Positions 30,636 to 31,957 are shown, counted from the first letter of the stretch. The stretch: DNA of 64,000 bases from Bugula neritina (GCA_964035545.1 OZ037773.1:2881751-2945750); one strand, 5' to 3'. The notes: a model not told the origin generated them from the sequence alone. Numbers and translations: made by a program.

Positions 30636-31184
30636 TAAGCATCCCATCCATATATCCAAAACCTAATGAGCTCTTGTCTAATAGGACAGTACTCTACATG
30701 TATAGCAACATACATTGTTGTCACATCTCTAAATGCATGTGTGCACAATTATGATGGTTATAGCTGGCGTCATTTTCAACTACTATTTCATGCCATACAT
30801 CATCCCTGTGGACATGGTAATGCCTCATTCCCAATAAAATACAGTCATGAAAATAACTATTATAACTATTATAGCTTTTCTTGATCATTGTACCTCTATT
30901 TTATTGGTTTTGTGTTGATTTTGGTTGAGAAATATTGCACCAAGTATATTATTTTCATAATACATCGCCAATTGTTAGTAAAGTTGATGCATGACTATTG
31001 TATTGTAAGTTTTCATATTCTTTAGTTTTTCTAATACATTGTGTTGTGTTACGGCAGCCCAAATTACAATACCCGCATGCATGACAATATAAAATGGTTT
31101 ATGCTACATGTTTACAGTAGAGCAGTTACTAATTCTCAGACTATAGAATTAAATATATATATGGTGTGGGCCATGGTACTCTGT

Positions 31185-31231
31185 TCTGTGCTGATGAGGG
31201 GACAAATTTCGAAACAGCTGCTGTCCACAGA
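31185..31231 (+). ncRNA. Minimal type I hammerhead ribozyme motif (copy 1, G-U-rich stem II)
   Basis: TCTGTG | CTGATGA | GGGG-ACAAA-TTTC | GAAA | CAGCTGCTG | TC | CACAGA: complete catalytic core, 6-bp stem I, palindromic stem III, predicted GUC cleavage after 31225. Confidence 0.8.
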
Positions 31232-31303
31232 TTGAGATATATATATATATATATATATATATATATATATATATATATATATATATATATATATATATCT
31301 CAA

Positions 31304-31350
31304 TCTGTGGACAGCAGCTGTTTCGGGATTTGTCCCCTCATCAGCACAGA
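31304..31350 (-). ncRNA. Minimal type I hammerhead ribozyme motif (copy 2, intact stem II)
   Basis: Minus strand reads TCTGTG CTGATGA GGGG-ACAAA-TCCC GAAA CAGCTGCTG TC CACAGA; predicted cleavage after the C at 31310. Confidence 0.85.
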
Positions 31351-31957
31351 ACAGAGTACCATAGCCCACACCTTCGCAATATATATATATATATATATAT
31401 ATATATATATATATATATATATATATATATATATATATATATATATATACTGTATATATATATATATATATATATATATATATATATATATATATATATA
31501 TATGCCACAATTATAACAGCTCTGGTTTTACAGTTTAATGACCTGTTTTGAAGTGTCAACACAAACTATGAAGTAATACAACTGCTGAAATCGATGAAGA
31601 ACAAATTAGAGGAGGAATTACTAATTAGTCTAATCTTTGCTGGTTTTGCTGTTCAACAAACTCAGAGCCTTTAAACAAACTTATTTTCACAAGGAAATTT
31701 GTTCTAATTCAATTTTAGAAGCAATCATCTGTAATTAGTCTGCTTACTTTAAAATTGCAAAACCAATAATATATAATCGCATCACCAAATATGATTTATT
31801 CTGATATTGAATGCTGTGAAGCATAGGTAAGAAACAAGCTACCTCAACAGTTGAAAATAAACAAACGTAAACCCAATACATATTTCAGTTTATTAAGGTA
31901 GTGAAGTTCTAATAATATATCTTTTTAACAGACAATGAGTTTGTATAACGAATTTCT

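Follow-up and report, generated by a model that had tools for sequence, protein, structure and literature searches.

Between two neighbouring genes of Bugula neritina, a run of TA repeats is interrupted by an inverted pair of short sequences, each resembling a minimal hammerhead ribozyme. The question raised by this locus is whether the pair acts on the transcripts of its neighbours or is the debris of a mobile element, and which element that might be. A single (TA)n microsatellite lies between unique DNA at 31152 and 31503 and is split by two inverted blocks, here called the plus and minus arms; to the right of the minus arm a longer (TA)n tract resumes (31380–31502). The parts are as follows, in coordinates of the window, i.e. 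the whole 64,000-nt stretch of DNA that was analysed.

31153–31162, no strand: (TA)5, what is left of the target microsatellite immediately upstream of the plus arm (from the sequence and the insertion alignment)
31163–31237, plus strand: plus arm, a 75-bp 5'-truncated copy of a probable retrozyme, unit positions 209–271 followed by a 12-nt tail
31185–31231, plus strand: plus-arm hammerhead motif, which would cut after the C at 31225
31238–31297, no strand: central (TA)30, which the 3' ends of both arms adjoin
31298–31379, minus strand: minus arm, an 82-bp 5'-truncated copy of the same probable retrozyme, starting at unit position 200 (84 bp when an ambiguous TA is counted)
31304–31350, minus strand: minus-arm hammerhead motif, with the predicted cut between 31310 and 31309
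31380–31502, no strand: right part of the microsatellite, (TA)35, CTG, (TA)25
42458–42468, plus strand: third trace of the family, an 11-nt 3' tag, made up of the element's final bases, inside another (TA)n tract

The flanking genes, A and B, are plausibly labelled Ly6-like from their Pfam matches to QVR and Ly-6_related, all of which are sub-threshold (E 6e-4 to 0.08) and fall short of a formal Pfam call. The minus arm lies on the sense strand of both genes, in agreement with the original prediction, which had also placed it about 790 nt past the stop codon of gene B; this codon is at 32136–32138, 757 nt ahead of the minus arm. The candidate ATG of gene A is at about 30647.

Both arms carry the complete type I hammerhead motif. 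This confirms the arm coordinates, stems, core, GUC site and 31310/31309 cleavage position that had been predicted, and from the motif we infer activity as a ribozyme. In the plus arm the 5' strand of stem I (31185–31190) is followed by CUGAUGA (31191–31197), stem II (GGGG/UUUC with the loop ACAAA, 31198–31210), GAAA (31211–31214), stem III (ACAG-CUG-CUGU, an 11-nt near-palindrome, 31214–31224), C17 at 31225 and the 3' strand of stem I (31226–31231), with the tail reaching 31237; the order of the motif closes with the U of the GUC triplet, the complementary strand of helix I and then UUGAGA. The minus arm has the same layout with stem II GGGG/UCCC, and over the 47 nt of its ribozyme it matches exactly the commonest sequence of the family described below. 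In both arms the core is canonical throughout (C3 U4 G5 A6 U7 G8 A9 and G12 A13 A14), as are A15.1-U16.1, C15.2-G16.2, G10.1-C11.1 and C at H17. Helices I, II and III have 6, 4 and 4–5 contiguous pairs, respectively, with helix I open and helices II and III closed; helix I could extend past an internal loop, adding a putative tertiary contact.

As a monomer, the hammerhead is predicted to be at a disadvantage: its fold (−12.7 kcal/mol) is 2.9 kcal/mol worse than an alternative (−15.6 kcal/mol), and the minimum-energy fold lacks helix III. The predicted optimum for a dimer is a double hammerhead formed through helix III, at −42.1 kcal/mol versus 2 × −15.6 kcal/mol.

The plus arm appears to have decayed. 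Two C-to-T changes at 31208–31209 reduce its stem II to one G-C and three G-U pairs, and had been taken as substitutions that preserve pairing. A C-to-U change opposite G always yields a G-U pair, and because of this the UUUC version is no evidence that pairing has been kept. The CC-to-TT change has a single match genome-wide, i.e. it is private to this copy, and stem II no longer forms in the predicted fold of the plus arm. On these grounds the change is better read as decay than as maintenance, and the earlier reading is abandoned.

Could such motifs be chance look-alikes in AT-rich repeat DNA? A descriptor comprising the core and at least 4, 3 and 3 contiguous pairs in helices I, II and III, applied to both strands of the 64-kb window, gave exactly two matches, the two arms, against an expectation of 0.005 per dinucleotide-shuffled window. 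Searches with formal models did not recover the motif above noise or threshold. A search with Rfam type I hammerhead models, which had been put forward as a check, was run and failed: nothing in the whole window matched at gathering score, and at the E-value threshold the 351 nt searched returned solely microRNA-like artefacts of the (TA)n hairpin. On the arm alone, RAGATH-1-hammerhead reached 15.2 bits (E 1.4, threshold 56.3) and Hammerhead_3 12.8 bits (threshold 48.5), both sub-threshold, with the RAGATH-1-hammerhead alignment on the isolated arm drawing the same three helices. We regard the Rfam miss as a limit of the models toward minimal variants, though the formal test failed. A covariance model, R1, was built from four hammerheads of Penelope-like elements (PLEs) of this genome with the structure set by hand. 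With default filters it found neither arm; with filters off, its 19 matches, all at noise level, included the minus arm in ninth place, at 11.6 bits (E 3.4), but not the plus arm. R1 is too narrow, with an AU-rich helix I and near-identical training rows, and its result is a failed independent test, not counter-evidence. Both model searches leave some room for the chance reading. Against it stand the descriptor counts, the canonical state of every core position and the presence of the motif in every unit of a family that has the hallmarks of retrozymes. Furthermore, when at least nine hammerhead types from this genome are compared, at least eight of them other than that of the arms, the helices change in sequence yet stay paired and the core is kept; this was seen by inspection, as MAFFT alignments of nine types came out of structural register and gave no formal pair count. 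Overall, the probability that the motifs arose by chance is negligible.

The nature of the arms became apparent at the level of the genome. In the 216-Mb genome the 82-nt minus arm returned at least 796 candidate matches; those that were scored are 95–100% identical to it. The repeating unit was defined from a two-copy locus and then by alignment of 30 loci, with one genomic unit (L015:1571–1841), numbered from the cleavage site, serving as the reference in place of a consensus. It is 271 bp long with 43% GC, and its longest frame has at most 45 codons. Allowing up to three mismatches, the 47-nt ribozyme with its tail occurs in 486 copies, 243 on each strand (148 of the 486 perfect), compared with 0 for the reversed-pattern control. 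Exact tandem junctions are present in 39 copies, which run straight into the next unit via GAGA-TA-TTACGC, and arrays of at least four units at 271-bp spacing exist; most copies are single or truncated. The copies are bounded by (TA)n alone and lack LTRs, a primer-binding site and a polypurine tract. The RNA of the unit is predicted to fold at −103.9 kcal/mol (z = −9.2 versus shuffles), and helix I closes the structure. Metagenome contigs scanned with an exact pattern that left stem II unconstrained gave no match.

Copies within the family are too alike to show compensatory change. At up to three mismatches, the 47-nt ribozyme is found in more copies than the adjacent 47 nt (178), a difference that is only suggestive of conservation as it is confounded by indels and truncation. 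A strong difference in substitution rate between the ribozyme and the rest of the unit, seen over 68 loci, was rejected as circular, the loci having been picked for near-perfect ribozymes.

Since the features of the unit equal those published for metazoan retrozymes (PMC7229834, PMC7761336), we identify the family with this class: the two arms are very probably 5'-truncated copies, dead on arrival, of a metazoan non-LTR retrozyme, a retroelement of 271 nt that is non-coding, young and abundant. The minus arm differs from the family majority at one position, outside the ribozyme. The original prediction of two 5'-truncated insertions of a (TA)n-targeting hammerhead family is borne out by the unit starts (209 and 200) and by the (TA)n that adjoins 67 of the 68 insertions studied. 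It had named either a PLE or a retrozyme as the parent; the short, non-coding tandem unit of 271 bp upholds the latter, while the RT/GIY-YIG parent is not sustained, PLEs existing separately in the genome. The arms were also considered as fragments of a PLE pseudo-LTR, a candidate that was rejected as no ORF follows on from any of the 68 insertions and BLAST found no similarity to the six PLE 3' regions sampled or to the full L062 element.

The anatomy of the copies is informative about how they arose. Sixty-eight insertions were analysed, with 40 further loci added and the sample picked via near-perfect ribozyme copies. The 3' end is fixed: in all 68 it falls on one base, 12 nt past the cleavage site, and is followed by (TA)n in every case but one, which has (TG)n. 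The 5' flank carries at least five TA units in 49 insertions, two to four in 9 and none in 10, and the (TA)n could thus be partly carried or extended by the element and not solely targeted. Lengths range from 49 to 598 nt: 40 insertions are shorter than one unit, 17 comprise one unit, beginning at positions 4–12, and 11 are longer, the longest in the sample having 2.2 units. There are also 3'-end tags of 11 and 16 nt, the former inside the window. Junctions at the 5' end fall on TA/AT dinucleotides in 35 of 68 insertions versus 9 expected, an excess that is partly due to alignment extension into the TA flank, an effect that, by our estimate, might raise the expected number twofold. Hot spots are still seen at positions 188, 200, 168 and 12; of these the minus arm uses position 200, a recurrent TA-microhomology junction common to loci L089 and L098, and the plus arm position 209.

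This anatomy points to target-primed reverse transcription from a template that can be traversed repeatedly, either a circle or a multimer. In the mechanism that we propose, genomic retrozyme units would be transcribed, and the type I hammerhead, whose helix III may be too weak in a monomer, would pair with a second copy via the near-palindromic helix III; the paired hammerheads would then cut after GUC. The resulting 271-nt RNA would probably be circularised by a host ligase and may be copied by the reverse transcriptase of resident PLEs of the Hydra clade, with a nicked (TA)n microsatellite as the starting point. Priming is proposed to occur on the sole AUAU that the RNA contains, immediately 3' of GAUUGAGA, which would explain why the end of every copy abuts (TA)n 12 nt beyond the cleavage site. 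An early stop would leave truncated copies and a stop at the next AUAU one-unit copies, while repeated passage round the template could give the copies of 1.1 to 2.2 units in the sample and the arrays of at least four; the 5' end would be joined preferentially at TA microhomologies. The rolling-circle idea for retrozymes (PMC7761336) is in line with this copy anatomy. The oligo-dT metatranscriptome, the sole RNA run, contains a 220-nt contig in which unit positions 143–271 lead straight into positions 1–91. This fits a circle or a tandem transcript, although DNA carry-over would look alike, and all sequence runs consist of assembled contigs, which hold neither RNA ends nor strand.

A candidate for the mobiliser emerged from the search for other hammerhead cores, which led to inverted repeats flanking a 706-aa ORF in locus L062 (L062:2440–4560, minus strand). 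The protein has 884 candidate loci in the genome and several intact lineages with a mutual identity of 45–52%. It contains a CxCX5C linker, a GIY...YIG motif without the inner cysteine pair, and CxxC and CxH near its end. Sequence searches of this ORF against Pfam, NCBIfam and PDB gave no match, and a Pfam GIY-YIG search of the genome returned a single locus; the nearest Atlas clusters carry RVT_1, GIY-YIG and HTH_animal. PLEs of the Hydra clade have been described as having the CxCX5C linker, no CCHH, canonical hammerheads and insertion into (TA)n (PMC8557442, section 11). From motif inspection and the Atlas neighbours, the resident PLEs appear to match this clade, with a C-terminal GIY-YIG, no CCHH and a length below 3 kb. 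In each of the six PLE lineages sampled, the 3' region has its own minimal type I hammerhead and adjoins (TA)n. These hammerheads have the core CUGANGA...GAAA, a short palindromic helix III and helices of different sequence that are nevertheless paired, and sit 70–170 nt before the PLE 3' ends.

BLAST of the 271-nt unit against the six PLE 3' regions and the full L062 element revealed no similarity, and because of this the link to PLEs rests on the common target, the ribozyme design and the co-occurrence of the two. Given the retrozyme identity, mobilisation of the family by PLEs is nonetheless probable. A rival concerning the mechanism, and not the identity of the family, is that a LINE moves it. 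SINEs driven by LINEs likewise combine a fixed 3' end with 5' truncation of variable extent, LINE fragments are frequent in the flanks, and the lack of shared sequence with the sampled PLE 3' regions would fit this as well. However, the one LINE family used as a control ends in (GA)n and is not bound to (TA)n: unrelated DNA comes next in 12 of 13 further copies, and in the remaining one (L120) a short GATATA is succeeded by the same family in inverted orientation. The (TA)n association is therefore not general for retroelements in this genome, whereas every PLE lineage sampled ends in (TA)n and shares the minimal hammerhead architecture. In addition, copies longer than one unit with exact periodicity resemble the formation of PLE pseudo-LTRs. 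We thus consider a LINE mobiliser unlikely and retain the PLEs as the candidate.

How the two arms came to face each other can be addressed by comparison with other loci. Tail-to-tail pairs of family copies are present at four loci genome-wide, including the window, with spacers of 60–258 bp, and head-to-head (divergent) and same-strand neighbours occur in (TA)n tracts too. Since (TA)n is its own reverse complement, insertions may take either orientation. (TA)n tracts gather several insertions, and that of locus L012 has three different elements in a row. The likeliest history is that two independent insertions into one microsatellite would have given the tail-to-tail pair, as such pairs recur at four loci. 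The alternative is a single event: a PLE-style complex insertion primed at two ends, or else a duplication that crossed the palindromic (TA)n by fold-back or template switching. Inverted copies truncated at the 5' end are known among PLE insertions (PMC8557442), inverted pairs of PLE fragments are found in this genome (L062, L048, L032), and the two arms are alike in length and in low divergence. Two-end priming, however, would put the 3' ends outward in a head-to-head arrangement, as in L062, L048 and L032, and the ends of the window pair face inward across (TA)30. A copied block is also difficult to reconcile with arms that stop at 209 and 200, where the extra bases of the longer arm belong to the element, or that differ at 3 of 75 bases, and the presence of divergent, convergent and same-strand neighbours in (TA)n tracts further weakens the case. 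Two insertions remain the best reading because the 3' ends face inward, the unit starts differ and three bases differ; a single event is improbable.

This leaves the question of whether the pair has a local role. It had been suggested that the minus arm cuts read-through RNA co-transcriptionally before the second arm is made, and a more general version would have it cut read-through from the Ly6-like gene and so separate the tandem units, possibly with family RNA acting in trans. Its sense orientation relative to both genes, the possession of the commonest family form of the 47-nt ribozyme and the predicted gain from dimer formation with a second family RNA are all compatible with such a role. 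Several observations are not. The active monomer fold loses to the alternative, and the complementary arm is made within about 135 nt of the minus-arm ribozyme, whereupon the inverted pair, with 75-bp arms and a self-complementary (UA)30 centre, is predicted to form a hairpin of −187.9 kcal/mol (z = −26). The hammerhead of an efficient coral retrozyme cleaves at 0.8 per min (PMC7229834); even at this rate, we estimate from usual Pol II speeds that the seconds available would allow cleavage of only a few percent. Ahead of the minus arm, AATAAA signals occur at two positions, 244 and 338 nt after the stop of gene B, and three further, unrelated loci have the same arrangement. Cutting of read-through RNA during its transcription is therefore unlikely at this locus, and the wider proposal that the minus arm separates the two genes is most improbable.

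The hairpin itself could matter, either as putative dsRNA, formed in a read-through transcript, from which small RNAs would silence the family, or, at the DNA level, as a cruciform or fragile site. The arms are near-perfect over 75 bp around the (UA)30 centre, and a silencing trigger would have a target in a family that is young and abundant. The number of such pairs, four in ~450 insertions, is nevertheless what is expected of orientation-blind insertion into common tracts, and we judge a role for the hairpin to be very unlikely. This reading is compatible with transposon debris as the best explanation, and adds only a consequence to it. There is a similarly slim prospect that the pair is not inert in one of two putative ways, through a trans-completed double hammerhead that cuts read-through or through a hairpin that triggers small-RNA silencing across the family. 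Taken together, the pair looks like ordinary transposon debris and not a local regulatory device, and we infer the absence of local function. The locus itself, as debris in an intergenic microsatellite, is of very little import; what it reveals is of modest interest at the level of the family.

At that level, a young retrozyme is found together with intact PLE lineages of the apparent Hydra clade, with a common (TA)n association and hammerhead design that the LINE control does not share. The retrozyme copies bear a target-primed signature, with the fixed 3' end, graded 5' truncation, TA microhomology and exact periodicity of over-length copies.

Comparison with known systems places the family in more than one context. 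Among hammerhead satellites and SINE-like elements, Sm-alpha of Schistosoma and satellite 2 of newts differ from it in sequence and host. To our knowledge neither targets (TA)n, and the hammerhead of newt satellite 2 works as a double hammerhead only. Both are, like the present family, short, abundant non-coding type I hammerhead repeats (see also PMC7761336).

Closer resemblances are to the minimal hammerheads of PLE pseudo-LTRs, as described in Cervera and de la Pena 2014 and Lunse, Weinberg and Breaker 2017 to the extent that these are cited in PMC7761336. The arms share with them the canonical core, the short, near-palindromic helix III with a loop of 0–3 nt and the predicted action as dimers. 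In contrast to the sampled PLE 3' regions, the arms and the family are unattached to an RT/GIY-YIG ORF. With respect to the C-terminal EN+ PLEs of the Hydra clade (Craig et al. 2021, PMC8557442), the resident PLEs match in having a single ORF of ~700 aa, and the retrozyme has the same (TA)n association and ribozyme type; these PLEs, which motif inspection assigns to the clade, are the candidate mobiliser and not the element in the window.

The closest match is with the metazoan non-LTR retrozymes (Cervera and de la Pena 2020, PMC7229834; review, PMC7761336). Like these, the family is non-coding, with a unit of 271 nt that falls within 150–450 nt and contains one type I hammerhead, has exact head-to-tail periodicity, a GC content below 45% and a very stable, self-paired RNA, may be expressed, with one contig in an RNA library, and co-occurs with hammerhead-bearing PLEs. 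It differs in being mostly dispersed, as single or 5'-truncated copies (39 junctions in 486 copies) and not long arrays, and in its exact 3' terminus and strict (TA)n association, of which no description was found in the retrozyme literature compared. Whereas invertebrate retrozymes are mostly reported to cleave as monomers, the helix III of this family is weak, like those of amphibian and PLE hammerheads. The class is thus a known one, the metazoan non-LTR retrozyme, of which this family is a further member in an invertebrate genome. In metazoan retrozymes no motif betrays which autonomous element moves them (PMC7761336), and a 2026 preprint has argued for a PLE origin of retrozymes from sequence relatedness in vertebrates (bioRxiv 10.64898/2026.07.22.740005). 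B. neritina makes both the partnership of retrozyme and PLE and the rolling-circle template testable in one invertebrate species with active-looking partners.

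Tracts of (TA)n act as nests for successive insertions. In a single (TA)n region at locus L012, three insertions follow one another on one strand: a Penelope-like element (PLE) lineage contributes its 3′ end, a different lineage is represented by a 38-nt piece of its tail, and the 271-nt hammerhead retrozyme family by a copy of 138 nt. About five (TA)n tract loci are found in the 64-kb window, a density at which the whole genome would offer many thousands of potential landing sites. Between two of these tracts lies a block of 449 bp (window 42493–42941) that is without a hammerhead.

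Nested insertions and (TA)n tracts
L012:1380–2300, minus strand: three elements nested in a single (TA)n region
Window 42393–43123: additional long (TA)n tract complex
Window 42458–42468: 11-nt tag within this complex, an exact match to the final bases of the 271-nt element
Window 52380–52479: additional long (TA)n tract
Window 63548–63647: additional long (TA)n tract

The 11-nt tag is isolated, with the (TA)n tract around it, and a 16-nt tag of the same element is present at L008; both look like the products of reverse transcription that stopped almost at its start. A LINE family that ends in a (GA)n tail, and whose copies are about 80–87% identical (L015:900–1300; L111–L124), was used solely as a control for the (TA)n association. 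In 12 of 13 further copies, unrelated DNA comes after the (GA)n tail; in the remaining one (L120), a short GATATA comes next and then a copy of the 271-nt family in inverted orientation.

Within the 271-nt family, the reference unit (L015:1571–1841) carries a hairpin immediately upstream of the ribozyme, and an older copy shows that decayed subfamilies exist.

Features of the 271-nt family
L015:1750–1775 (unit positions 180–199): hairpin GTAAAAC-TATAA-GTTTTAC
L065:487–596: older copy, 82% identical, in (TA)n directly downstream of a PLE 3′ end; an internal deletion has taken out GAAA and helix III

In other subfamilies, represented by loose contig ends, the hairpin reads GTAGAAAC-ATAA-GTTTCTAC. 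Because both of its sides are altered, these sequence variants hint that the helix is maintained among source copies. Summed contig word depth on the reference unit in sequencing runs X1 and X15 reaches tens to hundreds of thousands, very high values for runs of this size, although this depth is not a measure of expression; should these runs be RNA libraries, they would point to an extremely abundant element.

Hammerheads are also found on the PLEs themselves. Another type, with helix I ATCACC/GGTGAT, lies on head-to-head pairs of 5′-truncated PLE fragments at three loci, with (TA)n flanking each outer side of the pairs, and a full-length PLE forms a head-to-head junction with an inverted 5′-truncated copy, where a minimal hammerhead is present at each 3′ end and both 3′ ends adjoin (TA)n.

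Hammerhead-bearing PLE loci
L048:1340–2400 (also L038 and L052): fragment pairs with the ATCACC/GGTGAT hammerhead type
L062:2290–5900 (assembly G000:C8:10554790–10558400): full-length PLE, its 706-aa ORF intact

Since at least five PLE lineages, with mutual identity of 45–52%, keep intact frames, PLEs look to be active in this genome. The sole Pfam GIY-YIG match in the genome (L031, G000:C1:24630658–24630858; 40.5 bits) is presumably a host gene and has no relation to the PLE endonucleases. Sequence searches of Pfam, NCBIfam and PDB returned no match for the 706-aa ORF of the full-length PLE; the motifs of this ORF match those of the Hydra clade.
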